This document shows positions 8,601 through 52,177 of a stretch of DNA of 64,000 nucleotides, piece after piece. Within the stretch, counting starts at the first letter, position 1. The number at the start of each line of letters is the position of its first letter. Both the position numbers and the translations under genes were made by a program. The stretch is from NCBI GenBank assembly GCA_002269645.1, contig NIVC01000010.1, positions 1,798,001 to 1,862,000 of the forward strand, given 5' to 3'. The stretch is from Macrostomum lignano (Eukaryota). The notes beneath the pieces are model-generated. The model saw only the letters and a program-made list of their open reading frames with translations. It was not told the origin of the DNA and made no database searches.

Positions 8601-9171
8601 CAAACAACAGAAAAGCAGACAAAATTCACATGCTTACAGTTTCTGTCCTGATTGAGATACAGAGTTGAGACTTTACATGTAGACAGAGAATGAGTCAATA
8701 AAGAATTGTGTCAAATTTGAAGTCAATCGCTTCACGTGGAGCAAAACTATGGCAGCCGAAAGTTAGGCATTTTAAAACCTACTCACACCCTTTGCCCAGA
8801 TCGGGAAAGAGAGGCAGGCGGGCGGAGGTTGGGGTGGCTGCCTCGCTGAAAAAAACAGCCAAACTTTAAAAGTGCACAGCGCCGTTCAGGATTAACTTTC
8901 AGACTCGAAATTTTACATGATTGTGCCAAAATAGTTTAAGATTATCTGTGTCAAATTTGAAGAGAATCGGTAGAAGTGGAGCTGCGCTATGGAGGATTTA
9001 GTGAAAAAAATGCGCATTTTGAGCAGTTTTTTGCACTTTTAGGTAGGAAGACTCAAATTTAGGAAATTAAAAGGTAGCCTAAGACATTCTCCGTAGTAAG
9101 TTTAGGGTGGGTGTAAAGTTTGGTGTCATTTGGTTGAGCGGTTTGGGAGTCCATAGCGAAGTAATTTGTCC

Positions 9172-20324: not shown

Positions 20325-20580
20325 ATGCAAGGCGGTGGTGTGATAAGCATCACGGTTAAGTGCGACTTGGCCTACAGTCAAGCTGCTGGTCGGGTGCACC
20401 TGCGTCTGGGCGTTGATCGAACTCTCGACTCTCTTCTTGACGAATTCTGCTCTCATATGAGAATTCGAAGATTGCCAACTTTGTCACTGCGCAACGATTT
20501 GCATAGCGAGCTGGCATTGGACTTGACATTGGCTGCTGCTGGCCTGTCTGATGGCGACGTTATCTATGCCTTCGACTCTG
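20325..20580 (+). CDS. Exon encoding a ubiquitin-like (beta-grasp, SUMO/Rad60-SLD-like) domain
   Basis: ISITVK..RVHLRL..TLDSLLDEFCSHM..LSLRN..LDLTLAAAGLSDGDVIYAF matches the Ubl pattern (L.D..TL...G..DGD.I); strong donor G|GTGAGG at 20580/20581; no terminal diglycine. Confidence 0.7.
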
Positions 20581-23500
20581 GTGAGGGTTCAGTTAGTTTG
20601 CAGGCAGCTTCAAGCACTTTGGCTTTAGTTAGAGGCCCATTATTACTGCCCATTCCGCCGACTACCCTGAGCATGCACACTAGTGCGCGCGGATACGTAC
20701 GCAGCCATACGCACAGGCACACACTCACACAGGAGTGTACAGCGGCCCTAACTTTATTTATCGTCAGCCATGTACTTGGGGGTTGGCCCTCAGGGCCGTT
20801 AATTTTCAGCCCCGCTGGGAAAAAATTGCAGCGACGGCACTGTGACGACAAGCGACGACAGGCTAGAGACGATTTAGTCTTGAAGTCTTGATTAGCGCCT
20901 GAATATCTGAATATCTGTCATACGAGATTCATCTTTGTTTATCCCGTCTCATTGCTAAACTGCAGATCCGCCGCCTCCGCCCCCCGAACCGGTGCTGGCC
21001 AGGGACTCGGCTTCTAATTGGTGGATCTTAGCTGCGGCCGCACTGGCTATTGGCCTGTTCGGTGCTGCCGCCATCATTACAATGTTTGTCATTGGCAATC
21101 AGCCTATTGATGCGGTGAGATTAAAAACCAGGGCCACTGGTCCCCTGTTTAGGTTTGGAATGTCACTAATTCCATGTGATTCATTTTGGGATGTCTGATT
21201 CCAGATGACTCGGTTTGGGATGTCACTGATTCCAGCTGCTTTTTGTTTGGGATGTCACTGATTCCAGATGCTTCGATTTGGGATGTCACTGATCTCAGAT
21301 GCTTCAGTTTGGAATGTCACCGATTCCAGATATTTGTGTTTAAAATGTCACTGATTCCAGATATTTGTGTTTAGAATGTCACTGATTCCAGATATTTGTG
21401 TTTAGAATGTCACTGATTCCAGATATTTGCGTGTTTAGAATGTCACCGATTCGAGATATTTGTGTTTAAAATGTCACTGATTCCAGATATTTGTGTTTAG
21501 AATGTCACTGATTCCAGAAATTTTGTGTTTAGAATGTCACTGATTCCAGATCTTTGCGTGTTTAGAATGTCACTGATTCCAGATATTTGTGTTTAGAATG
21601 TCACTGATTCCAGATCTTCGTGTTGTTAGAATGTCACTGATTCCAGATCTTCGTGTTGTTAGAATGTTACTGATACTGTAATCCTAAACTTGTCACTGGA
21701 TAATTATCTCGTCACCGCTCGCACCCACAGTACGGAGTCATTATCGACGCCGGGTCCAGCTCATCCAAAGTGTACATCTACACCTGGCCAGCGTCCAAGA
21801 CAAATGGAAATGGCGTAGTGTCTCAACGCGCAGTAGCCAATAATTCTTGTACGTTTTGTTTATAAAATATTTATAAACTGGAAACCAGTTAAGATTAGAT
21901 ACTAAAAATTGTCGAATTATTTTTTGCAGCTGCTCCAATAGAAAGTTCTCAAGGCATTAACCAGATTGAATGGTCGCTAAGATCGTTGGATTCCGTGGTG
22001 CCAGAGGATCGGAAAGCCAAATCTGAACTGTTCCTTGGCGCCACTGCCGGCATGCGAATGTACAGGTGAATGGCATTGTCCGCTGCCAACTGTCATCATG
22101 GGTTCGAGCCCTAGATACTTGATATCTATGGCCAGCCTTGTAGAATTTAGACATGTTTCCTGTCAGTGTCCCATATCTTCAGTTGCTGGGCCTGTTTCCC
22201 AGATCCTCAGTTGCTGGGCCAGCCTCCAAATTCTCAGTTACTGGGCCAGCCTCCAGATTCTCAGTTGCTGTGCCAGCCTCCAGATTCTCAGTTGCTGTGC
22301 CAGCCTCCCAGATCCTCAGTTGCTGTGCCAGCCTCCAGATTCTCAGTTGCTGGGCCAGCCTCCAGATCCTCAGTTGCTGGGCCAGCCTCCTAAGATCCTC
22401 AGTTGCTAGGCCAGCCTCCCAGATCCTCAGTTGCTGGGCCAGCCTCCTAGATCCTCAGTTGCTGGGCCAGCCTCCTAAGATCCTCAGTTGCTGGGCCAGC
22501 CTCCCAGATCCTCAGTTGCTGGGCCAGCCTCCCAAGATCCTCAGTTGCTTGGCCAGCCTCCCAAGATCCTCAGTTGCTGGGCCAGCCTCCCAGATCCTCG
22601 GTTGCTGGGCCAGCCTCCCAAGATCCTCAGTTGCTGGGCCAGCCTCCCAAGATCCTCAGTTGCTGGGCCAGCCTCCCAGATCCTCGGTTGCTGGGCCAGC
22701 CTCCCAGATCCTCAGTTGCTGGGCCAGCCTCCCAAGATCTTCAGTTGCTGGGCCAGCCTCCCAGATCCTCAGTTGCTGGGCCAGCCTCCCAAGATCCTCA
22801 GTTGCTGGGCCAGCCTCCCAGATCCTCAGTTGCTGAGCCTCGATCCCAGATCCTCAGTTCCTGGGCCAGCCTCAATACCAGATTCTCAGTTGCTGCGCAT
22901 GGCGCCATCATTCTAAGAATTCCACTTGACACACAAAAAACCCGCAGCGCCGTCAACAGCACAGCAGCAGAGTTAGTATTGAACGGAGCTCGGCAGGTAC
23001 TAACCAGCAAGTTCGCTTACAAAGTATCCAACGCTACAGGACAGATTCGTATAATCACCGGAGCAGAAGAAGCAGTTGGCGCCTGGATTAGCGTTAATTA
23101 TCTCAAGGTATGCAATATCGCTATTCATTGCCGATATGTATCGAAAAATCACTTTTCTACTGACTCAATTGTAGAACAGTTTCGGAGATTTCGCCTCTTC
23201 CTCGCTGACCTCGCGAGTGGCCAGATCTGTTGGCTACCGTCAGCTAGCTAACGATTTTGACACCTTTGGCAGCTTGGACCTCGGCGGCGCCAGCACTCAG
23301 ATTGCATTCGTTCCGGCTGCCAATTTCACTCCAGCTGATTCGGTATCATCAAAGACTCACATTGTACCGTTGAGTTTGTACGGCAAAGTGTACAATGTGT
23401 ACGCTTATAGCTTCCTGTGCTACGGTAAAGCTGAAGCTGAAAACAGGATGCTGGCTAGCGTTATTGCTAATGCTGGCTATAATAGTTCGGCTGTCATAAA

Positions 23501-26500
23501 TACGCCTTGTTGGCAGGTGAGCATTTTTAGGGGTCTGCTTCTAAAGCATTAAATGTTTTGTAGCCCTGAAGTATCGGATGTTTTATAGCCCTGAAGTATC
23601 GGGGGGTTTTGTAGCCCTGGAGTATCGGGGGGTTTTGTAGCCCTGAAGTATCGGATGTTTTATAGCCCTGAAGTATCGGATGTTTTATAGCCCTGAAGTA
23701 TCGGATGTTTTTTAGCCCTGGAGTATCGGATGTTTTATAGCCCTGGAGTATCGGATGTTTTATAGCCCTGGAGTATCGGGGGGTTTTGTAGCCCTGAAGT
23801 ATCGGATGTTTTATAGCCCTGGAGTATCGGGGGGTTTTGTAGCCCTGAAGTATCGGATGTTTTATAGCCCTGGAGTATCGGATGTTTTATAGCCCTGGAG
23901 TATCGGATGTTTTATAGCCCTGGAGTATCGGATGTTTTGTAGCCCTGGAGTATCGGGGGGTTTTGTAGCCCTGAAGTATCGGATGTTTTATAGCCCTGGA
24001 GTATCGGATGTTTTTTAGCCCTGGAGTATCGGGGGGTTTTGTAGCCCTGAAGTATCGGATGTTTTATAGCCCTGGAGTATCGGGGGGTTTTGTAGCCCTG
24101 AAGTATCGGAGGCTTCAGTAGCCTGAAGTATCGGCGGTTTCAGTAGCCTGAAGTATCGGCGGTTTCAGTAGCCTGAAGTATTGGAAGTTTCAGTAGCCTG
24201 AAGTATCGGCGGTTTCAGTAGCCTGAAGTATCGGCGGTTTCAGTAGCCTGAAGTATCGGCGGTTTCAGTAGCCTGAAGTATCGGCGGTTTCAGTAGCCTG
24301 AAGTATCGGCGGTTTCAGTAGCCTGAAGTATCGGCGGTTTCAGTAGCCTGAAGTATCGGCGGTTTCAGTAGCCTGAAGTATCGGCGGTTTCAGTAGCCTG
24401 AAGTATCGGCGGTTTCAGTAGCCTGAAGTATCGGAAGTTTCAGTAGCCTGAAGTATCGGAGGTTTCAGTAGCCTGAAGTATCGGCGGTTTCAGTAGCCTG
24501 AAGTATTGGAAGTTTCAGAACCAATAAGTGTTTATAGAAGTTTTTATGGCCCTTAATTATAGATGGTTTCAGCGCTCTGAAGTATCAGATCAGAGTGATG
24601 ATCTTGCACCAATCCGCCATACTACACAGGCTGACTACACAGCAACTGTCCGAGCAACTGACGTATTTCAACGTCCCTGCTCTGATCGCTGGCAGCTGCA
24701 GCCTTCGCCGCCTCCGCCATCAGTTCTCGCTAGACTCAATTTCACAATTCGGGGCACTGGCAGCTATGAGAACTGCTCAAAATTAGTTGGTAAATTTTTT
24801 AACGCCAGTTGCGATCAGAGCACGTGCTCGTTTAATGGCGTTTTCCAACCGGCGCCCGCTAGCAAGTTTGTGGCATTCTCCGGCTTCTACTATGTGGCGT
24901 CATTTTTCAACGCTAGTAATATTGGATCCGACCGAATGCAGTTTGTTAATGCTGTGAGAGCCTTCTGCCAGAAGAGATATCTCGCATCCATTGGCTATAG
25001 CGATAGCTTCCTGAGATGGTACTGCTTTGATGGAGTGTACGTTCTGTCGTTATTGAATGCCTATGGATTCAATGAGACTAACTGGGGTCTGCTTGAGTTT
25101 GAGGACTCGGTATGTTTGGGGGGTTTTATACATATTTTTTTCTGGGATAATGGGATTTTAATAATAGGATTACCTTGAGTCGAATAAGAGAGTTTATGAG
25201 GATTTTAATAATGAGTCCACCTTGGGTCTAATGGGAAATTGAGGATTTAAATTATGAGTCCATCTTAAGTCGAATGGGAGAAAGGGTCCGGGGATTTTAA
25301 TAATGAGTCCACCTTGAGTCGAATGGGAGAATGAAGATTTTAATAATGAGTCCACCTTCCTTGAGTCGATTGGGAGAAAGAGGATTTTGATAATGAGTCC
25401 ACTTTCCTTGAGTCGATTGGGAGAAAGAGGATTTTGATAATGAGTCCACCTTGAGTCGAATGGGGGAATGAGGATTTTAATAATGAGTCCACCTTGAGTC
25501 GAATGGGAGAATGGGGATTTTAATAATGAGTCCACCTTGAGTCGATTGGGAGAATGAGGATTTTAATAATGAGTCCACCTTGAGTCGATTGGGAGAAAGA
25601 GGATTTTAATAATGAGTCCACTTTCCTTGAGTCGATTGGGAGAATGAGGATTTTAATAATGAGTCCACCTTGAGTCGAATGGGAAAATGAGGATTTTAAT
25701 AATGAGTCCACCTTGAGTCGAATGGGAAAATGAGGATTTTAATAATGAGTCCACCTTGAGTCGAATGGGGGAATGAGGATTTTAATAATGAGTCCACCTT
25801 GAGTCGAATGGGGGAATGGGGAATTTAATAATGAGTCCACCTTGAGTCGAATGGGAGAATGAGGATTTTAATAATGAGTCCACCTTCCTTGAGTCGATTG
25901 GGAGAAAGAGGATTTTGATAATGAGTCCACTTTCCTTGAGTCGATTGGGAGAAAGAGGATTTTGATAATGAGTCCACTTTCCTTGAGTCGATTGGGAGAA
26001 AGAGGATTTTGATAATGAGTCCACCTTGAGTCGAATGGGGGAATGAGGATTTTAATAATGAGTCCACCTTGAGTCGAATGGGAGAATGGGGATTTTAATA
26101 ATGAGTCCACCTTGAGTCGAATGGGAAAATGAGGATTTTGATAATGAGTCCACTTTCCTTGAGTCGATTGGGAGAAAGAGGATTTTGATAATGAGTCCAC
26201 CTTGAGTCGAATGGGGGAATGAGGATTTTAATAATGAGTCCACCTTGAGTCGAATGGGAAAATGAGGATTTTAATAATGAGTCCACCTTGAGTCGATTGG
26301 GAGAAAGAGGATTTTAATAATGAGTCCACCTTGAGTTGATTGGGAGAATGAGGATTTTAATAATGAGTCCACCTTGAGTCGATTGGGAGAAAGAGGATTT
26401 TAATAATGAGTCCACCTTAAGTCGAATGGGAAAATGAGGATTTTAATAATGAGTCCACCTTGAGTCGAATGGGAAAATGAGGATTTTAATAATGAGTCCA

Positions 26501-28347
26501 CCTTGAGTCGAATGGGGGAATGAGGATTTTAATAATGAGTCCACCTTGAGTCGAATGGGGGAATGAGGATTTTAATAATGAGTCCACCTTGAGTCGAATG
26601 GGGGAATGAGGATTTTAATAATGAGTCCACCTTGAGTCGAATGGGGGAATGAGGATTTTAATAATGAGTCCACATTGAGTCGAATGGGGGAATGAGGATT
26701 TTAATAATGAGTCCACCTTGAGTCGAATGGGAAAATGAGGATTTTAATAATGAGTCCACCTTGAGTCGAATGGGGGAATGAGGATTTTAATAATAAGTCC
26801 ACCTTGAGTCGAATGGGGGAATGAGGATTTTAATAATGAGTCCACCTTGAGTCGAATGGGAGAATGAGGATTTTAATAATGAGTCCACCTTCCTTGAGTC
26901 GATTGGGAGAAAGAGGATTTTAATAATGAGTCCACATTGAGTCGAATGGGGGAATGAGGATTTTAATAATGAGTCCACCTTGAGTCGAATGGGAGAATGA
27001 GGATTTTAATAATGAGTCCACCTTCCTTGAGTCGATTGGGAGAAAGAGGATTTTAATAATGAGTCCACCTTGAGTCGAATGGGAGAATGAAGATTTTAAT
27101 AATGAGTCCACCTTGAGTCGAATGGGAGAATGAGGATTTTAATAATGAGTCCACCTTGAGTCGAATGGGGGAATGAGAATTTTAATAATGAGTCCACCTT
27201 GAGTCGAATGGGGGAATGAGGATTTTAATAATGAGTCCACATTGAGTCGAATGGGGGAATGAGGATTTTAATAATGAGTCCACCTTGAGTCGAATGGGAG
27301 AATGAGGATTTTAATAATGAGTCCACCTTCCTTGAGTCGATTGGGAGAAAGAGGATTTTAATAATGAGTCCACATTGAGTCGAATGGGGGAATGAGGATT
27401 TTAATAATGAGTCCACCTTGAGTCGAATGGGAAAATGAGAATTTTAATAATGAGTCCACCTTAAGTCGATTGGGAGAATGAGGATTTTAATAATGAGTCC
27501 ACCTTGAGTCGAGTAGGAGAATGAAGATTTTAATAATGAGTCCACCTTGAGTCGATTGGGAGAATGAGGATTTTAATAATGAGCCCACATTGAGTCGAAT
27601 GGGAGAATGAAGATTTTAATAATGAGTCCACCTTGAGTCGATTGGGAGAATGAGGATTTTAATAATGAGCCCACATTGAGTCGATTGGGAGAATGAGGAT
27701 TTTAATAATGAGCCCACATTGAGTCGAATGGGAGAATGAGGATTTTAATAATGAGTCCACCTTGAGTCGAGTAGGAGAATGAAGATTTTAATAATGAGTC
27801 CACCTTGAGTCGATTGGGAGAATGAGGATTTTAATAATGAGCCCACATTGAGTCGAATGGGAGAATGAAGATTTTAATAATGAGTCCACCTTAAGCTTCT
27901 GTAGTTGAGGTAGCAGCACTTTAAATAACTATTCTAGCAAACTTTTTTACACAAAAATTTAATGCATGTTGCTATTTGTAATAATTAATTTTAGATTACT
28001 GTCAATCATTCTACAAGTGCAGGCGAACAGGTAAGGCTGGTACAAAAATTATAATTTGTGGACTTTATTGTTTCTTTATAATGTTTAATTTTAACAAAAG
28101 TAAACTGGTGGTTAAAATGTCTCAAATCTTTTGTCAGGCCACGTCAGCTAACAAAGTGGGCTGGTCGCTTGGCTACACGATACTTCAGTCCGGTCTGATA
28201 CCCGCCGAATCGCCTCTGATGTCGCTCTCGCTCCCCATGTTCATCATTCTATTAATAATGTTCGCCGCCTTCTTGGGGTTCGCCGTGCTGTTTGGCTGTT
28301 TGGGTAGGCGAGTTAAACAGCGAGCTCAAGGCTATGTGACTATCTGA
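20325..28347 (+). CDS. ENTPD: CD39/GDA1-family ecto-NTPDase (apyrase) with an N-terminal ubiquitin-like domain, two TM helices and a C-terminal GYVTI motif; 616 aa (628 with the optional exon)
   Basis: Exons 20325-20580, 20966-21114, 21731-21848, 21930-22065, 22948-23107, 23175-23516, 24630-25109, [27995-28030], 28138-28347; all GT-AG and phase-compatible; 1851 nt without the optional exon. Apyrase motifs: YGVIIDAGSS (ACR1), LGATAGMR (ACR2), GAEEAVGAWISVNYL (ACR3), GSLDLGGASTQ (ACR4), VGWSLGY (ACR5); also CSFNGVFQP and FVAFSGFYY of the CD39 clade. In-frame TAA at 20310 precedes the ATG. Linkage of exon 1 is less certain than that of the catalytic exons. Confidence 0.9.
21150..21672 (+). repeat. 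31 bp minisatellite in NTPDase intron 2
   Basis: Unit GTTTAGAATGTCACTGATTCCAGATATTTGT; degenerate at the 5' edge. Confidence 0.9.
22175..22895 (+). repeat. 28-29 bp minisatellite in NTPDase intron 4
   Basis: Unit CCAGATCCTCAGTTGCTGGGCCAGCCTC. Confidence 0.95.
23555..24520 (+). repeat. 25 bp minisatellite with two sub-arrays in NTPDase intron 6
   Basis: TAGCCCTGAAGTATCGGATGTTTTA up to ~24110, then CAGTAGCCTGAAGTATCGGCGGTTT. Confidence 0.95.
25185..27893 (+). repeat. 43 bp minisatellite (47 bp variant) in NTPDase intron 7
   Basis: Unit GAGTCCACCTTGAGTCGAATGGGAGAATGAGGATTTTAATAAT; variant units carry an extra TTCC. Confidence 0.95.
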
Positions 28348-28434: not shown

Positions 28435-29612
28435 ACCTGAATAGCCCTGAAGTAATCCCTAGCCCTGACTTATCCCACCTGAATAGCCCTGAAGTATCTC
28501 ACCTGAATAGCCCTGAAGTATCCATAGCCCTGAAGTATCCCTAGCCCTGACTTATCCCACCTGAATAGCCCTGAAGTATCTCATCTAAATAGCCCTGAAT
28601 TCTCCCACCTGAATAGCCCTGACTTAACCCACCTGAATAGCCCTGAAGTATCCCATCTGAATAGCCCTGACTTATCCCACCTGAATAGCCCTGAAGTATC
28701 TCATCTAAATAGCCCTGAATTATCCCACCTGAATAGCCCTGACTTAACCCACCTGAATAGCCCTGAAGTATCCCATCTGAATATCCCTGAAGTATCCCAC
28801 CTGAATAGCCCTGAAGTATTCCATCTGAATAGCCCTGAAGTATCCCTAGCCCTGAAGTATCCCCCTGAATAGCCCTGAAGTATCCCACCTGAATAGCCCT
28901 GACTTATCCCACCTGAATAGCCCTGAAGTATCCCACCTGAATAGCCCTGAAGTATCCCACCTGAATAGCCCTGAAGTATTCCATCTGAATAGCCCTGAAG
29001 TATTCCATCTGAATAGCCCTGAAGTATCCCACCTGAATAGCCCTGACGTATCCCACCTGAATAGCCCTGAAGTATTCCATCTGAATAGCCCTGAAGTATC
29101 CCACCTGAATATCCCTGAAGTATCCCACCTGAATAGCCCTGAAGTATTCCATCTGAATAGCCCTGAAGTATTCCATCTGAATAGCCCTGAAGTATCCCAT
29201 CTGAATAGCCCTGAAGTATCCCACCTGAATAGCCCTGAAGTATCCCACCTGAATAGCCCTGAAGTATCCCATCTGAATAGCCCTGAAGTATCCCATCTGA
29301 ATAGCCCTGAAGTATCCCACCTGAATAGCCCTGAAGTATCCCATCTGAATAGCCCTGAAGTGTCCCATCTGAATAGCCCTGAAGTATCCCATCTGAATAG
29401 CCCTGAAGTGTCCCATCTGAATAGCCCTGAAGTATCCCACCTAAATAGCCCTGAAGTATCCCACCTGAATAGCCCTGAAGTATCCCATCTGAATAGCCCT
29501 GAAGTATCCCACCTAAATAGCCCTGAAGTATCCCACCTAAATAGCCCTGAAGTATCCCATCTGAATAGCCCTGAAGTGTCCCACCTAAATAGCCCTGAAG
29601 TATCCCACCTGT
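28435..29612 (+). repeat. 24 bp minisatellite just 3' of the NTPDase stop
   Basis: Unit ATAGCCCTGAAGTATCCCACCTGA. Confidence 0.95.
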
Positions 29613-33500: not shown

Positions 33501-36500
33501 CATCATCAGCATTATCGCGACAGAGATCGCGTGGACAGAGACAGAGAGAGGGATAAAACTAGAGACAGAGATCGTGACAGACAAAGCGGCAGGCGTCGCG
33601 AAGATCGTCGCGAAGATCGAAAGCATCACCGCCATGCCGATGAGGTAGAGAAGCACAGAAAATCGAGACACAGACGGAAGTCCTCCAGCAGCAGCAGCAG
33701 TTCGTCCTCGTCAGATGATTCTCCAGCCAGACAAAAATCTGAAAAACAGTCCAGCGGCGCCTCTATTGAAGAGCGTCGTCGGGTGAAAGCGCTGCTCAAA
33801 GCTGCCGAGACTCCCGAGCAGAAGCGGGCCCGTCGGTTGGCTAAGAAGGCGGCTAAGTCGGAACGACGGCGTCGGGAACTGGGCTGGGAGGGCGACTACA
33901 CGGATAGAGATAATCCGTTTGGCGACGAGAAGCTAACGCAGACTTTCGTTTGGCATAAGAAACTGCAACGCGAGGGCGGCACTATGGCCGACGTGGAGAG
34001 AAAAGCGGCTGAGAATCGGGCTGAGCTCGAAAAGGTTTTGTTTTGGGTTCATTGTTTAAGTCATTGTTTGGTTATAAGTCATAATTCTAATTCAAAATTT
34101 TAGTCATTGACGTCATAGATCAGTCATTGAAGTCATAGATCAGTCATAGATCAGTCATAGATCAGTCATTGAAGTCATTGATCAGTCATTGAAGTCATAG
34201 ATCAGTCATTGAAGTCATAGATCAGTCATTGAAGTCATAGATCAGTCATTGAAGTCATTGATCAGTCATTGAAGTCATTGATCAGTCATTGAAGTCATAG
34301 ATCAGTCATTGAAGTCATTGATCAGTCATTGAAGTCATTGATCAGTCATTGAAGTCATAGATCAGTCATTGAAGTCATTGATCGGTCATTGATCAGTCAT
34401 TGAAATCATAGATCAGTCATAGATCAGTCATTGATGTCATAGATCAGTCATTGAAGTCATTGATCGGTCATTGATCAGTCATTGAAATCATAGATCGGTC
34501 ACTGATGTGTCATCACATGCTCATTAGGATCATTGCTATAGCCTTATCCTATTCCCCAAACAAACCGCAGGTCCGCGAGCGTTGCCGTCAGAACGAGCTG
34601 GAACGCGAGGCCCGGCTGAAGGAGCAGGAGCAGGAGCAGCGCGATCGCGAGTCTGAGAACTTTCGCCAGTGGTGGCAGCAGGAGGACGCGTTCCACTTGA
34701 AGCAGGCGCGGGCCAGATCGGCCATCCGCATAGCCGAAGGTCGCGCCAAGCCTATCGACCTGCTGGGCAGGTATGCCGAAGCTTTGCAAAGAATCTCTGG
34801 TATTAAAATTAAACGCGATGACGGGGCGGACGACAATGATGACGAATTTGATGAAGACGAGAGTCTGGCTTTCTTAGACGCCCATTCGCCGGACGCCCTG
34901 CTCACCGGCTTGAGCGTTGACGATCTCGAGGATTTAAAAGTCGATATCGGCGTCTATCAGAAATTGGAACGGCAGAGCGGCTTAACCGAAGGCGCCTGTC
35001 GGGACAGCGAGACTTTCTGGAGCTGCGTAGCTCTGCTAGTTCAGCACGCTCTGGATAGCAAGACTGCACCGGCTGCCAGCTCCGCCACGGCTGCCGTTGC
35101 TGACAGAATCGACGCCGTCATCAGGGGCAAGTCGGCCAGCCAGTTGGCCGCTCTGGAAGACTCCGTGTCCGCCAGAATCTGCGCGGCCGGACCGGGCACC
35201 GATCTGGCCTACTGGGAGGAGATGCTGGACAAAGTTAAAGTGGCCAAGGGGAAGGCTACGCTGCAGGAGTTGCATAAAGTGCTGCTGCGTAGGCGAATGC
35301 AGAGACTGCAGGTTAGTAGGTTTGATAGAATCTTCATCTTCATTTAATACCTTAACTAGCGCTAATCCCCAATCGGAAGTATCCCGCTAATCCATACCCG
35401 GAAACCCGATGAAAACTCTAGCGCTCTGGCGATTCTAGCGCTTATTTTTATGGTAGATCGTTTTCAACTGGAAATACCCCGCTGATCCTCATCAGGAAAT
35501 ACCCGGCTGATCCTCATCAGGAAATACCCGGCTGATCCTCATCAGGAAATACCCCACTGATCCTCATCAGGAAATACCCCACTGATCCTCATCAGGAAAT
35601 ACCCCACTGATCCTCATCAGGAAATACCCGGCTGATCCTCATCAGGAAATACCCCACTGATCCTCATCAGGAAATACCCCACTGATCCTCATCAGGAAAT
35701 ACCCCACTGATCCTCATCAGGAAATACCCCCATTGATCCTCATCAGAAAATACCCAGATAATCCCATCCGAAAATTCCCCCCTAATGTCCAACCGAAAAT
35801 GCCCCGCTAATCCCTATCTAAAATACCCCTCACTTTGATTATAAAATCTAAAAAATACCCCTAATCCCAGTCCAGGAGCACCCATCTATACCATTCCCGC
35901 CGTCAAAACACTCTAGGAGCGTCAGTCGGCCGACCAGGGAGCGGAAGTCGACGACCCGGAAGTGGCAGCGGCGTCGGCCACGGCAGCGACGGCAACCAGC
36001 AGCGCCGCCTCCGAGGAAGGCGGCGGCGACACCGCCGAGTCAGCCGATGACGACGAGGCCGAGCAGCAGAGGCAGCAACAGCAAAAGCAACAGCAGCAGC
36101 AGCAGCAGGCTCTTGATGCGTACGATTCTGGTCGATATTCGCCGGCAAAACTCGACCCGGACACGGTCGCCGGTCAGATAGTGATCAACTGGAGCGAAGA
36201 GTCGGTCAGGCTGGAGCATCTCCGACGTCAGGCTGGCGACGCGGCAGCGCCCGAGCCGGAAGAGAAAACCGAAGAGATTGCGGTGAAAACTCCCGGCCTG
36301 GCGGCCTGGTCAGACCGGCTGAAGCCAAAGAAGCCGCGGTATTTTAATCGGGTTAATACCGGCTACAATTGGGGCGCTTATAATCGGACGCATTTCGATT
36401 CGGACAATCCGCCGCCGAAGATTGTGCAGGTGAGAGCGGAAACTAATTTAAATTTGTGTTTATTTTCGTTTTGATTAAAATCCTACTGGTTGGCAAACTT

Positions 36501-46116: not shown

Positions 46117-47733
46117 TCACACAGAGGTCTCGTACACCAGGCAGACAGCCTCGACCAGCATGGGAGTCGGGCTAGGGCTGGGACTGGCACTGCGGGCCCC
46201 CTGAAGGCAGCCGCGACCTCCTGGTGGCAGCAGGCGCACATGCTGCTGCTGATTGCCGTCTCTGCTGAAAACCGGTATAAGACCAGCCGACTTCTTGTCT
46301 CTCCGCGGCTGCTCCTCGCAGTCCTGACTGAGCGGCTCGCTGAACCGGACCAGCCGAGGCCGCTGACGCCATTGGCGACGCCGATGCCAGCAGCAGAAGT
46401 TGGCCAGGCCTTCGCGGCAACGACAGACCAGCCGGCGACCGAAATCCGTGGTGCAGGCCAGCAGTAGGAAGTTGAACAGCGAGTCCAACTCAACCAGAGT
46501 GTTCACAACCAGTTCCGTGAGCGGCGCTTTGTCCTCAACAAAGCCGCAGAGATCGGTGGGACTCTCCAGGATTAAACAGCTGACTGACAGGGCCACGATA
46601 ATGCGAATCGCTTGCCGTTCTCGCCGGCTCTGTCGGCGGCCCTGCCGCATGTCGGCGGGCGGCCGGGTTCGCCTGGCCGGAGCCAAGCGGCTTCGAGCCG
46701 CGGAGGCCTGGCGCAGCACCCGCACCGTGATGCAGGTGGCCACGAATATTGACACGATCGGGAGCAGGCCCTGCAGCACCGGTTGGATGGGTGATAAGGT
46801 TTAGTATATTAGACTAGCGGTTTTCGGCCCCCCTCTGGGGGTATAATTGATCTCAGCAGATATTGTTGATCCTGCTTTCCCATACTATGCATCCCATCCT
46901 ATTACTATGGATCCTATAACATACTATATAGATCCCATCCCATCCTATTACTATGGATCCCATAGTAGGGTTAAAAGGTTAAAAGGTTAGAAAGGGATTA
47001 CAGATAGCTGCAGTTTACATCAGCGTGCGTCTCAGCACTAGCACTATAATTTCGAGCTAAACCCTTCCCCTAAAAATGCGCATTAGGCATCACCTGACCT
47101 CACCTGGAAAGCGTAGAATGCAAATTCGATCGCCCGTGCCTGACTCGAACTTAAATACTGACTTCTCAGCTGCCCATCCTGCGCCATCACCATGGCAACG
47201 CTAAGCGTCATAGCTACACAGCCGATACCGGTTTCCATGACAACCAGGTAAGCCAGACGAAACGCTGTGCCTCGCTGCGACGTCAACGGACGAAAGACCG
47301 CTTCTACGCGCGACCAGGACACGAGGCACATCGTCCAATTGCGCATGCACAGTGCGGCGCGAAGCGCGCACAGCAGCACCAAAATTGGCGCCGGAGTCTC
47401 CGCAGATTGGTCAGCCGAGGCGGGCAACACGGCGGCAGGCAGGTAGGAGGCGATCACGCAGCTGTGAAACAGCAGCTCGAACAGGGACATGGCGACCAAC
47501 AGGCGGCGCAGCACTGGGTGCACGCTGCGACCTCGGCGCAGAAAATGGGCAAACGCCAGTACAGACAGGCAGCAATTCACGCTGGACAATGGCAGGTAGA
47601 AGTACGGCTCCAGTGGGTGAGCGAACCGTTTCACTGGGCTGCTGATATTGCTGAAGTTGCTGACGCCGCCGCCGATTCTGTTGTAGTTTGACGTCAAAGC
47701 AGCTGCAAGCTCGTCGTAAGTTGCCAAGTCCAT
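46117..47733 (-). CDS. Rhodopsin-class (peptide-receptor-like) 7TM GPCR, 427 aa, two exons
   Basis: Exons 47733-47104 and 46770-46117, phase 0 (CAG|GTGAGG ... CTGCAG|GGC). N-terminal NFS/NIS sequons, hydrophobic TM segments, WSRVEAVFRPL at the DRY position, GLLPIVSIFVATCITV (TM5), AIRIIVALSVSCLILESP (TM6), LVELDSLFNFLLLAC (TM7). Confidence 0.8.
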
Positions 47734-48317
47734 ATTGTGCTCTAGGCCAGCTAAAAGATTTCGTGCAAGTAAAGACTTCTTCTGTTTTGTGCCTACATAG
47801 GTATATATATAGAGAGAGCTACCGTTCTTCATCCGTGCATGCGTATGTGCTGAAGCGGCTTAAAACCCAGGGAGCGAGAGCAGCCAATCCGGTTGCAAAA
47901 TTGGATTCGGAGAAGGCGGTTGCTGAGGCTGAATCGCGGAGGATGAGGTGGAGAGGCTGGGTAGGGGGGATGAGCTACTCTCCGGAGAGGCTAAGAGGAT
48001 ATTTCAAAGGGGATTATTGAGTGACTTAGGAGCAGCTAAGTTCTACTGAATCCCCATGCGTCTGCAGCATAAATGAGTTTTTGTTAATCCACCTGTAAGA
48101 GAAAACAAATTAAATTTTTATTTGTTTCTTTGTTTGTTCAGTGATTAATTTTGCATTCTGTTTTGTTGCTGGTGATTTTAATGAAGAATTGAAAGAAAGA
48201 AGAAATTTTAACCAAAATCAGTGATTACAAACCACTTTTACAAATGGAGATGATAATAAATAATGCCGTTTTAAAATATTCATTTGTGTTCATGCCTTTT
48301 ATCATACAGGAGCTGTC

Positions 48318-49352: not shown

Positions 49353-49681
49353 ATCAAGCCAACATCTTGCATCCTTGTAAAGTTTTTCACTGAAGCGTTT
49401 ACTGTTGGGGAGGCACAGCTTCAAACGGAATTATGTTCGCGTTTTAAGAGCGACTCAACATCGACTCAAAAGAAACCGAAGGCTTTATAAAATTACTTCG
49501 GTAGAAGCTTCAGCTTCTTTAGTCATTTTCCTGCAATTAAGAAAATTTCTACAACTAATGCCAGAAGAAAATCTAGGCTAAAAGATGCTTTTGTAAATAA
49601 AAGGTTATTAGTCTTAAAAAAACCTTCTTTGATGCACTCTTCAGAGTTTTCGCTAAGTTTGCTCGTATTACCGTCTCTACC

Positions 49682-52019
49682 TTGCAGGCTTGGCGCCCCA
49701 GTCTTGCAGCTCTGGCCGCCCCAGTCTTGCAGCTCTGGCCGCCCCAGTCTTGCAGCTCTGGCCGCCCCAATCTTGCAGCTCTGGCCGCCCCAGTCTTGCA
49801 GCTCTGGCCGCCCCAATCTTGCAGCTCTGGCCGCCCCAGTCTTGCAGCTCTGGCCGCCCCAATCTTGCAGCTCTGGCCGCCCCAGTCTTGCAGTTGCAGC
49901 TCTGGCGCCCCAGTCTTGCAGCTCTGGCCGCCCCAGTCTTGCAGCTCTGGCCGCCCCAGTCTTGCAGCTCTGGCCGCCCCAGTCTTGCAGCTCTGGCCGC
50001 CCCAGTCTTGCAGCTCTGGCCGCCCCAATCTTGCAGCTCTGGCCGCCCCAGTCTTGCAGTTGCAGCTCTGGCGCCCCAGTCTTGCAGCTCTGGCCGCCCC
50101 AGTCTTGCAGCTCTGGCCGCCCCAGTCTTGCAGCTCTGGCCGCCCCAGTCTTGCAGCTCTGGCCGCCCCAGTCTTGCAGCTCTGGCCGCCCCAATCTTGC
50201 AGCTCTGGCCGCCCCAGTCTTGCAGCTCTGGCCGCCCCAATCTTGCAGCTCTGGCCGCCCCAGTCTTGCAGTTGCAGCTCTGGCGCCCCAGTCTTGCAGC
50301 TCTGGCCGCCCCAGTCTTGCAGCTCTGGCCGCCCCAGTCTTGCAGCTCTGGCCGCCCCAGTCTTGCAGCTCTGGCCGCCCCAGTCTTGCAGCTCTGGCCG
50401 CCCCAATCTTGCAGCTCTGGCCGCCCCAGTCTTGCAGTTGCAGCTCTGGCGCCCCAGTCTTGCAGCTCTGGCCGCCCCAGTCTTGCAGCTCTGGCCGCCC
50501 CAGTCTTGCAGCTCTGGCCGCCCCAGTCTTGCAGCTCTGGCCGCCCCAGTCTTGCAGCTCTGGCCGCCCCAATCTTGCAGCTCTGGCCGCCCCAGTCTTG
50601 CAGCTCTGGCCGCCCCAGTCTTGCAGCTCTGGCCGCCCCAGTCTTGCAGCTCTGGCCGCCCCAATCTTGCAGCTCTGGCCGCCCCAGTCTTGCAGCTCTG
50701 GCCGCCCCAATCTTGCAGCTCTGGCCGCCCCAGTCTTGCAGTTGCAGCTCTGGCGCCCCAGTCTTGCAGCTCTGGCCGCCCCAGTCTTGCAGCTCTGGCC
50801 GCCCCAGTCTTGCAGCTCTGGCCGCCCCAGTCTTGCAGCTCTGGCCGCCCCAGTCTTGCAGCTCTGGCCGCCCCAATCTTGCAGCTCTGGCCGCCCCAGT
50901 CTTGCAGTTGCAGCTCTGGCGCCCCAGTCTTGCAGCTCTGGCCGCCCCAGTCTTGCAGCTCTGGCCGCCCCAGTCTTGCAGCTCTGGCCGCCCCAGTCTT
51001 GCAGCTCTGGCCGCCCCAGTCTTGCAGCTCTGGCCGCCCCAATCTTGCAGCTCTGGCCGCCCCAGTCTTGCAGCTCTGGCCGCCCCAATCTTGCAGCTCT
51101 GGCCGCCCCAGTCTTGCAGTTGCAGCTCTGGCGCCCCAGTCTTGCAGCTCTGGCCGCCCCAGTCTTGCAGCTCTGACGCCCCAGGCTTGCAGCTCTGACG
51201 CCCCAGGCTTGCAGCTCTGACGCCCCAGTCTTGCAGCTCTGACGCCCCAGTCTTGCAGCTCTGACGCCCCAGTCTTGCAGCTCTGACGCCCCAGGCTTGC
51301 AGCTCTGACGCCCCAGTCTTGCAGCTCTGACGCCCCAGTCTTGCAGCTCTGACGCCCCAGTCTTGCAGCTCTGACGCCCCAGGCTTGCAGCTCTGACGCC
51401 CCAGTCTTGCAGCTCTGACGCCCCAGTCTTGCAGCTCTGGCCGCCCCAGTCTTGCAGCTCTGGCCGCCCCAGTCTTGCAGCTCTGGCCGCCCCAATCTTG
51501 CAGCTCTGGCCGCCCCAGTCTTGCAGCTCTGGCCGCCCCAATCTTGCAGCTCTGGCCGCCCCAGTCTTGCAGTTGCAGCTCTGGCGCCCCAGTCTTGCAG
51601 CTCTGGCCGCCCCAGTCTTGCAGCTCTGACGCCCCAGGCTTGCAGCTCTGACGCCCCAGGCTTGCAGCTCTGACGCCCCAGTCTTGCAGCTCTGACGCCC
51701 CAGTCTTGCAGCTCTGACGCCCCAGTCTTGCAGCTCTGACGCCCCAGGCTTGCAGCTCTGACGCCCCAGTCTTGCAGCTCTGACGCCCCAGTCTTGCAGC
51801 TCTGACGCCCCAGTCTTGCAGCTCTGACGCCCCAGGCTTGCAGCTCTGACGCCCCAGTCTTGCAGCTCTGACGCCCCAGTCTTGCAGCTCTGACGCCCCA
51901 GTCTTGCAGCTCTGACGCCCCAGTCTTGCAGCTCTGATGCCCCAGTCTTGCAGCTCTGACGCCCCAGTCTTGCAGCTCTGATGCCCCAGTCTTGCAGCTC
52001 TGATGCCCCAGTCTTGCAG
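49682..52019 (+). repeat. 22-23 bp GC-rich minisatellite with higher-order structure
   Basis: Unit GCAGCTCTGGCCGCCCCAGTCTT; 22 bp variant GCAGCTCTGACGCCCCAGTCTT dominates after ~51170. Confidence 0.95.
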
Positions 52020-52177
52020 GTAGTCACGCTACACTTTCACCACAGCAATCATCCCAGCAACAAGGAATCCTTAGTTCGGCATGGCTGAGCAAAGTGCACA
52101 GAACAAGAGCCATTCGCAAAGAGCAGATATCGGATTGCTCTTTGAGATAAAATCAAAGTCACGTGATGTTGACGGCT

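Follow-up and report, generated by a model that had tools for sequence, protein, structure and literature searches.

A putative tyrosine-based sorting signal, conserved across Bilateria, at the C-terminus of a CD39-type NTPDase of the flatworm Macrostomum lignano

CD39-type NTPDases set extracellular ATP and ADP levels and hence purinergic signalling, and in the vertebrate cell-surface enzymes NTPDase1, 2, 3, and 8 both ends of the protein are cytosolic. NTPDase4 and NTPDase7 (LALP70/LALP1) are intracellular apyrases (Golgi, lysosomal or autophagic vacuole). To our knowledge, the trafficking of CD39-type NTPDases has been studied in vertebrate enzymes, whose cytosolic ends are minimal. Among tyrosine-based signals, the reading of the G-Y-x-x-hydrophobic-COOH signals of LAMP1, LAMP2, and CD63 by adaptor mu subunits is established, and transferrin receptor YTRF and TGN38 YQRL are endocytic Y-x-x-hydrophobic signals read by AP-2 mu2. 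Here we describe a CD39-type NTPDase gene of Macrostomum lignano, a free-living flatworm kept in the laboratory and amenable to transgenesis, that lies on the + strand at 20325-28347 of a 64,000-nucleotide stretch of contig NIVC01000010.1 (assembly GCA_002269645.1), referred to as the window below. Its eight exons, all with GT-AG boundaries and compatible phases, encode a product of 616 amino acids that ends in G-Y-V-T-I. We consider it reasonably probable, judging from sequence comparison, that this GYVTI-COOH terminus is a functional tyrosine-based sorting signal of the adaptor-binding, endocytic type on an ancient bilaterian CD39-type ecto-NTPDase.

The C-terminal tail and its conservation

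Positions 28300-28347 of the window read TTG GGT AGG CGA GTT AAA CAG CGA GCT CAA GGC TAT GTG ACT ATC TGA, which translates as L-G-R-R-V-K-Q-R-A-Q-G-Y-V-T-I-stop; the part from 28303 to 28347, GRRVKQRAQGYVTI followed by the stop, is the tail behind the second membrane helix. It consists of a basic juxtamembrane segment, GRRVKQRAQ (28303..28329, +), whose four Arg/Lys residues fit the positive-inside rule, the terminal tyrosine motif G-Y-V-T-I (28330..28344, +), with Y613 at 28333-28335 and I616 at 28342-28344, and the stop codon TGA (28345..28347, +). A preliminary description of this DNA had noticed just such a tail, and the ending in G-Y-x-x-I on a predicted cytosolic segment at 28300-28347 is borne out. 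The independent M. lignano database gene models P0121, P0124, P0122, and P0127 share the ending GRRVKQRAQGYVTI. Moreover, a second genomic copy of the gene (L001, contig NIVC01000523.1) differs from the window in its last exon by eight synonymous and no non-synonymous changes, with the tail codons being the same and the similarity breaking off through an indel four bases past the TGA. This divergence pattern is the signature of a constrained coding frame ending at the TGA of 28345-28347, and the reading frame of the last exon is under purifying selection between the two gene copies.

Two alternatives to this C-terminus were rejected. In the second copy, a C-run before helix 2 is one base shorter (9052-9062, corresponding to 28226-28236 of the window), which cuts the annotated protein PAA81568.1 (P0001) inside helix 2 and lets it end in ..SLSLPCLSFC. 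This ending was discarded as an alternative C-terminus, as it arises from the loss of one base in the C-run and all eight downstream differences are synonymous in the window frame. Because everything downstream is conserved, with synonymous changes only, the C-run difference is likely a homopolymer assembly error in GCA_002269645.1 or else a very recent lesion. A cryptic donor, TGG/GTAGGC at 28302/28303, could in principle splice the tail away; however, GYVTI is reached in each of the four database models that are full-length or cover the C-terminus, and the codons that follow the putative donor are the same in the second copy, where similarity collapses only past the TGA.

The closest relative within the species is an M. 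lignano paralogue of 41% identity that ends in RTSRGKRKGYKPF (GYKPF). Counted from its first basic residue, its tail has 13 residues as in the window protein, and it likewise terminates in G-Y-x-x-hydrophobic-COOH. The following homologues from other animals are of about 590-630 amino acids and cover the full query including its N-terminal domain. Their C-termini are ..DGYGAIQ in Crassostrea, ..KSYGAV in Mytilus, ..NYGSI in Solemya, ..GYGAI in Pinctada, ..HYGSLD in Owenia, ..EYGSV in Lingula, ..EYGTV in Lineus, ..TYGAI in the tardigrade Hypsibius, ..GYGSIDSA in a millipede, ..AYGTI in an ostracod, ..KYGSV in Asterias, ..KYGAI in Saccoglossus, and ..NYGSV in Branchiostoma, to which shorter forms or isoforms from Pecten (..SYGTL), Capitella (..SYGSI), and the crinoid Antedon (..MYVSI) can be added. 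With both M. lignano proteins counted, Y-x-x-[LIVMF] is found no more than three residues from the end in 18 of 20 named invertebrate tails, covering molluscs, annelids, a brachiopod, a nemertean, a tardigrade, a millipede, an ostracod, echinoderms, an acorn worm, amphioxus, and the flatworm. Our first search recovered the terminal motif in 16/17 invertebrate matches versus 0/101 vertebrate NTPDase1/2/3/8 matches, whose tails end instead in KGIV or KDMV, ES-x-I, or RFCY; a later profile search added a bird NTPDase8-like cluster (..LGYEQL) and a hagfish protein (..QYERV) as vertebrate exceptions. As side observations on the vertebrate tails, the NTPDase1 proteins of birds, reptiles, and amphibians (P0014-P0041, non-mammalian) end in C-L-Q-K-G-I-[IV], and fish NTPDase2 (P0042, P0056, P0071, P0080, P0104, P0110, and others) ends in E-S-x-I, a class I PDZ-like C-terminus.

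The profile search, in which a profile of 15 homologues was run against 1.84 billion representative sequences, provided a less redundant set at the level of 50%-identity representatives. Among the representatives that carry the N-terminal ubiquitin-like domain described below and have a parseable tail, the motif lies within three residues of the end in 19/30, and is exactly terminal in 11 of these 19. Composition-preserving shuffles of the same tails gave a mean of 1.4 of 30 and a maximum of 7 in 2000 trials, compared with the 19 observed, in a statistic that is uncorrected for phylogeny. A functionless chance match is one competing explanation, and it draws on the brevity and degeneracy of Y-x-x-hydrophobic: shuffling the M. 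lignano tail yields a terminal Y-x-x-[LIVMF] in about 2% of trials, and one with a glycine preceding the tyrosine in about 0.2%, so that a single tail of this kind is weak evidence when taken alone. Conservation among the orthologues nevertheless lifts the motif well beyond chance in these comparisons, as members of three bilaterian superphyla keep it at the C-terminus in tails that otherwise cannot be aligned, and the second gene copy diverges synonymously only. We therefore regard a chance match as extremely improbable, and the terminal motif as almost certainly functional on comparative grounds.

In the alignment, the tyrosine column (Y613) is nearly invariant and the remainder of the tail cannot be aligned. 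The exactly terminal cases have Tyr in 11/11 and Gly in 9/11 at the next position, then Ala/Ser/Thr/Pro, and finally Val/Ile/Phe at the C-terminus itself. As judged from these tails, the conserved pattern is Y-G-[AST]-hydrophobic-COOH, usually in the form Y-G-[AST]-[VILF]. The glycine after the tyrosine is missing from the window protein (Y-V-T-I), its paralogue (Y-K-P-F), and the crinoid (Y-V-S-I). The oysters Crassostrea and Pinctada and the millipede share with the two M. lignano paralogues a glycine before the tyrosine, but this glycine is not general. Of the GYxxI motif for which the preliminary description had proposed a check in orthologues, it is thus the terminal Y-x-x-hydrophobic that is kept across Bilateria and not the preceding glycine.

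This pattern also bears on a different interpretation, namely that the terminal tetrapeptide is the ligand of a reader of free C-termini, of PDZ type or other, and anchors the enzyme to a cortical scaffold or membrane subdomain instead of mediating endocytosis. The free C-terminal position is conserved, the final residue is always V, I, L or F, and the consensus fixes small residues (G, then A/S/T) that adaptor binding does not need. Class II PDZ ligands have the pattern hydrophobic-x-hydrophobic, into which V-T-I-COOH fits, and the E-S-x-I ends of fish NTPDase2 are class I-like. However, position -2, the main specificity position of PDZ ligands, varies between V in the window protein, K in the paralogue, and G in most orthologues, while the invariant positions are -3 (Tyr) and 0, which is precisely Y-x-x-hydrophobic. 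In addition, one to three residues stand beyond the motif in 8/19 of the motif-bearing representatives with the ubiquitin-like domain, and a reader of free C-termini would not tolerate them. The variable position -2 and the residues beyond the motif in several species make a classical PDZ ligand unlikely; an anchoring function through any reader of this kind appears improbable to us, though less so than a chance match.

A second, upstream Y-x-x-hydrophobic is present in 12/20 tails, and eight of these have Arg/Lys at Y+2 (YERL, YEKI, YKRM, YQKL, YRRI, YSRL, YQRI, and YNKL); the M. lignano tail is shorter and has the terminal copy only. Paired motifs of this sort might indicate phosphorylation sites, which as a phosphotyrosine switch or SH2 docking site, similar to immunoreceptor tyrosine-based inhibitory or activation motifs (ITIM or ITAM), could link nucleotide hydrolysis to signalling or gate adaptor binding. 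The two motifs are 3 to 10 residues apart in those 12/20 tails, and YDQL-x7-YGTL of Pecten fits the ITAM spacing. On the other hand, a single motif is present in M. lignano, its paralogue, Saccoglossus, Antedon, Crassostrea, and the ostracod, the spacing between motifs is widely variable, and there is no conserved Y-2 residue as an ITIM needs, which makes a phosphotyrosine switch or docking site very unlikely.

The enzyme, its topology and its ubiquitin-like domain

The Pfam family GDA1_CD39 covers residues 134-574 of the product (expectation value E 3.8e-77), and apyrase conserved regions 1-5 all align with those of the homologues (DAGSS, GATAGMR, GAEE..W..NY, DLGGASTQ, and GWSLGY). The best database matches are M. 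lignano proteins of 96-98% identity, predicted only and named "hypothetical protein" or "NTPDase 1", and the top named matches are NTPDase1, 3, 8, and 2 at 33-36% identity. A phmmer search of the PDB sequences gave E-values of 1e-61 for rat NTPDase1, 1e-55 for NTPDase2, and 4e-20 for human NTPDase4. In a rough neighbour-joining tree, built with no outgroup and no bootstrap, the vertebrate NTPDase1/2/3/8 are monophyletic, and the invertebrate proteins including both M. lignano paralogues fall outside; the placement relative to NTPDase4/7 rests on the PDB E-values. These comparisons identify the gene as a co-orthologue of the four vertebrate cell-surface enzymes NTPDase1/2/3/8 and not as a relative of NTPDase4/7. 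The earlier assignment to the CD39-like sequences, away from the ENTPD4/7 clade, is thus confirmed by the PDB E-values (1e-61 versus 4e-20); of the phylogeny against NTPDase1-8 that had been proposed along with it, the tree supplies the position outside the monophyletic vertebrate group, and NTPDase4 is compared by PDB E-value only.

Both M. lignano paralogues share two further features of the ectodomain. They contain eight ectodomain cysteines versus ten (five disulfides) in CD39-type enzymes; the missing pair is that between conserved regions 1 and 2 (residues 155-200, exons 3-4, 21790-21990), which other CD39-type enzymes have in invertebrates and vertebrates alike. The sequence of conserved region 1 is DAGSSSS in both paralogues, and not DAGSSHT.

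There are only two hydrophobic segments in the 616-residue protein, at residues ~103-131 and 581-602. The second of them, membrane helix 2 (MFIILLIMFAAFLGFAVLFGCL; 28237..28302, +), reaches 2.93 in its best Kyte-Doolittle window and is followed by the 13-14 residues of the tail. Y613 is residue 10 of the tail when counting starts at the first basic residue, and residue 11 when it starts at the helix end. All ten N-x-S/T sequons and all eight ectodomain cysteines are located between the two helices. Because there are two helices only, because these sequons and cysteines all lie between them, and because the tail is basic, both protein ends are predicted to be cytosolic, as in NTPDase1/2/3/8.

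The N-terminal cytosolic end is itself a folded module, as far as structure prediction can tell. An AlphaFold2 model of the exon 1 product (residues 1-85), computed with 13 homologues, shows a beta-grasp arrangement (beta-beta-alpha-beta-beta) with a mean predicted local distance difference test score (pLDDT) of 86.4, and the top Foldseek matches of this model are SUMO1/2 and ubiquitin at TM-scores of 0.75-0.85 and E ~1e-6. The M. lignano paralogue is named "Ubiquitin-like domain-containing protein" in UniRef. The domain does not have a C-terminal Gly-Gly and continues into a poly-proline linker and helix 1; because of these two features it is predicted to be an integral ubiquitin/SUMO-like domain and not a cleavable modifier. 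As a predicted fold, the N-terminal ubiquitin-like domain of the preliminary description accordingly stands. Its further proposal that the two cytosolic ends carry sorting or degradation modules is correct as anatomy, and the function given to them would be inferential.

A profile of the ubiquitin-like domain matched 56/291 collected proteins, among them named carriers from a flatworm, mollusc, annelid, brachiopod, nemertean, tardigrade, myriapod, crustacean, insect, echinoderm, hemichordate, and cephalochordate, and it matched none of the vertebrate proteins in this collection. The terminal motif was found in 19/30 proteins with the domain versus 18/68 without it (Fisher p ~7e-4), a difference that is confounded by phylogeny and by isoform models. 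Isoforms with and without the ubiquitin-like domain are annotated in Lineus (629 versus 545 amino acids; P0139/P0273) and Branchiostoma (604/638 versus 527 amino acids; P0136/P0295-P0299), and the corresponding entry for Pecten is P0043. As the domain is encoded by exon 1 alone and isoforms exist with and without it, the gene models suggest that alternative first exons may switch the domain on or off in several species.

Candidate readers of the tail

The segment Y613-V-T-I616 conforms to the consensus Tyr-x-x-[L/I/M/F/V]. It lies in a predicted cytosolic segment with its tyrosine 10-11 residues past helix 2, and hence at least ~7 residues from the bilayer, the distance that applies to Y-x-x-hydrophobic signals; the tyrosine and the hydrophobic residue are kept in the orthologues while their neighbours are variable, as is characteristic of sorting signals. 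In the review of Bonifacino and Dell'Angelica, "virtually all" Y-x-x-hydrophobic signals are said to drive rapid internalisation in mammalian cells, and some of them lysosomal targeting as well (PMC2133128). We favour the adaptor-binding, endocytic reading because the two invariant positions of the tail are those that adaptors read and because of this statement on internalisation. A sorting signal is therefore the likely function of the motif, and the lysosomal refinement of this assignment is weaker.

If this is correct, the tail would bind the mu subunit of the clathrin adaptor AP-2, and the enzyme would be taken up from the cell surface. AP-1 or AP-3 may also read the tail and so direct the enzyme to endosomes or lysosomes. 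Cycling between the surface and endosomes would follow, trafficking could regulate the surface activity, and the cytosolic N-terminal ubiquitin-like domain may be a further module for trafficking or turnover. Both the ubiquitin-like domain and the motif would have been lost in vertebrate NTPDase1, 2, and 3.

The preliminary description went further and compared the tail with the lysosomal sorting tail of LAMP1. A signal of this type, read by AP-3 or AP-1, would make the enzyme a resident of lysosomes or late endosomes that degrades lumenal nucleotides. The preceding glycine, the extreme C-terminal position, and the short basic tail are LAMP1 features and are all kept in both M. lignano paralogues, which also have tails of equal length, and lysosomal targeting is among the functions of some Y-x-x-hydrophobic signals (PMC2133128). 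The spacing does not agree with this comparison, as the tyrosine is at tail position 10-11 here and at position 8 in the 11-residue tail of LAMP1. According to a study of LAMP1, YXXI in the 11-residue tail is sufficient for lysosomal delivery, but one residue fewer or five more before the motif almost abolishes delivery with internalisation largely intact, the spacing-altered protein being trapped in recycling between surface and endosomes (PMC2199866). The measured orthologues place the tyrosine 14-24 residues out, and most of them do so without a preceding glycine. Furthermore, mu3A prefers acidic residues adjoining the tyrosine, and AP-2 mu2 prefers Y-x-[R/K]-hydrophobic (PMC2133128); the neighbours of the tyrosine in the window protein are G, V, and T, with no acidic residue. 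The catalytic domain, finally, groups with the cell-surface NTPDases and not with NTPDase4/7. Because the tyrosine spacing departs from that of LAMP1 and acidic flanks are lacking, an internalised and recycling surface enzyme would be a more economical reading than lysosomal residence, which we hold to be doubtful. What remains of the LAMP-like tail is the glycine before the tyrosine and the terminal position, while the spacing (10-11 versus 8), the conservation of the glycine, and the acidic neighbours do not bear the comparison out; and of the two fates that had been suggested, an endolysosomal or a rapidly internalised enzyme, the latter is better supported than the former.

Several points weigh against an endocytic sorting signal read by clathrin adaptors. 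Two of the 20 named orthologues do not have the motif, namely the damselfly protein, which has none, and the octopus protein, whose tail ends in YGSTDVA. M. lignano itself departs from the orthologue consensus by having V or K in place of G after the tyrosine, and shared ancestry enters the motif counts as well as the shuffle statistics, neither of which is corrected for it. A literature search on NTPDase tyrosine or internalisation motifs found no study of binding, localisation or mutants for any protein of the group. Moreover, adaptor mu subunits are not known to need a sequence as narrowly defined as Y-G-[AST]-hydrophobic-COOH, a hint that the motif has another reader, in their place or alongside them.

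Taking up this last point, one may speculate that the ancestral bilaterian CD39-type ecto-NTPDase was trafficking-regulated via a three-part cytosolic module, that its terminal Y-G-[AST]-hydrophobic-COOH was read by a dedicated partner other than a clathrin adaptor, and that the module was dismantled in vertebrates after the NTPDase1/2/3/8 duplications. The three parts of such a module would be the N-terminal SUMO/ubiquitin-like domain, an internal AP-2-type Y-x-[R/K]-hydrophobic, and the C-terminal Y-G-[AST]-hydrophobic-COOH. We put this scenario forward as a tentative one to which we assign a low probability. Were it true, extracellular ATP would be controlled in most animal phyla by a mechanism that has never been studied, because the fly, nematode, and vertebrate models are without the module.

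Gene layout, significance and comparison with known systems

The eight exons, all on the + strand, partition the protein along its domains. Exon 1 (20325..20580) is defined by its open reading frame and a GTGAGG donor and contains the start codon and the entire N-terminal ubiquitin-like domain, residues 1-85. Exon 2 (20966..21114), placed by its AG/GT boundaries, frame, and hydrophobicity, encodes the poly-proline linker and membrane helix 1 (~21016-21102). The next exons were assigned by homologue alignment, with apyrase conserved region 1 (YGVIIDAGSSSS) in exon 3 (21731..21848), region 2 (LGATAGMR) in exon 4 (21930..22065), region 3 (ITGAEEAVGAWISVNY) in exon 5 (22948..23107), region 4 (DLGGASTQ) in exon 6 (23175..23516), and the cysteine-rich membrane-distal lobe of the ectodomain in exon 7 (24630..25109). 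The last exon, exon 8 (28138..28347), encodes conserved region 5 (GWSLGY) and the stalk in its part 28138..28236, ahead of helix 2 and the tail.

A further exon of 36 nucleotides (ITVNHSTSAGEQ; 27995..28030, +), with a TTTTAG acceptor, a GTAAGG donor, and phase 0, sits directly before conserved region 5. It is included in the database models P0001 and P0121 and missing from P0124 and P0122, and no counterpart of the insertion exists in the aligned homologues. Since it is used in some database models only and lacks an equivalent in the homologues, we treat it as a probable cassette (optional) exon and not as a constitutive one; it has no effect on the tail.

The surroundings of these exons are highly repetitive. 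Minisatellite arrays fill most of introns 2, 4, 6, and 7 (21153-21674, 22169-22895, 23555-24515, and 25143-27892), and the 3' flank (28460-29611) is likewise mostly minisatellite array, with periods of 23-43 base pairs and up to 63 copies. The core TAGCCCTGAAGTATC is common to the units of intron 6 and of the 3' flank. Similar arrays are found elsewhere in the window, for example as long repetitive open reading frames on both strands at 49523-52027. The adjacent multi-exon gene at 33531-36474 (+) is a cactin homologue (Pfam Cactin_mid, E 1e-43; CactinC_cactus, E 1e-15) whose N-terminus is rich in Arg/Asp/Ser. At 46117-47832 (-), two long open reading frames with several hydrophobic stretches possibly encode a multi-pass receptor; a Pfam search at E 0.01 matched neither of them.

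The motif class is textbook knowledge, and what is new here, on the evidence of the sequences compared, is its presence on a CD39-type enzyme, its Bilateria-wide conservation together with a ubiquitin-like domain, and the loss of both from vertebrate NTPDase1, 2, and 3. The longer form of the enzyme, with the cytosolic ubiquitin-like domain and the terminal tyrosine motif, is kept in most of the invertebrate phyla examined, including amphioxus. The literature that we searched has nothing on ubiquitin-like domains or tyrosine motifs in NTPDases, nor on the NTPDases of M. lignano. Should the motif act in endocytosis, these animals probably adjust their surface nucleotidase activity through internalisation, and the vertebrate loss of the module would be a datable change in enzyme regulation. 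The finding has no bearing on any long-standing open question.

With regard to known systems, NTPDase4 and NTPDase7 are two-helix NTPDases as well, but they are far more distant (E 4e-20 for PDB NTPDase4 versus 1e-61), with the window protein outside that clade. Vertebrate NTPDase1 (CD39), 2, 3, and 8 resemble it in the GDA1_CD39 ectodomain, conserved regions 1-5, the two terminal helices, and 33-36% identity; they differ in their short N-termini, which have no ubiquitin-like domain, and in their tail endings (the bird NTPDase8-like and hagfish proteins excepted), and M. lignano for its part lacks the first of the five conserved disulfide pairs. LAMP1, LAMP2, and CD63 have, like the M. lignano protein, a short and basic cytosolic tail whose last residues are G-Y-x-x-hydrophobic. 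In contrast to LAMP1, the M. lignano tyrosine lies 2-3 residues further from the membrane and that of the orthologues much further; there are no acidic neighbours, the glycine is confined to a few lineages, and the signal is carried by an ecto-enzyme with two helices, in place of a lysosomal glycoprotein of the type I or tetraspanin kind. Unlike in the transferrin receptor and TGN38, the conserved copy stands at a free C-terminus and is followed by Gly at Y+1 in most orthologues, for which mu2 has no known preference. The likeness to these two proteins consists in the consensus, in a cytosolic position at least 7 residues from the membrane, and in the upstream, mu2-preferred Y-x-[R/K]-hydrophobic that many of the orthologues carry.

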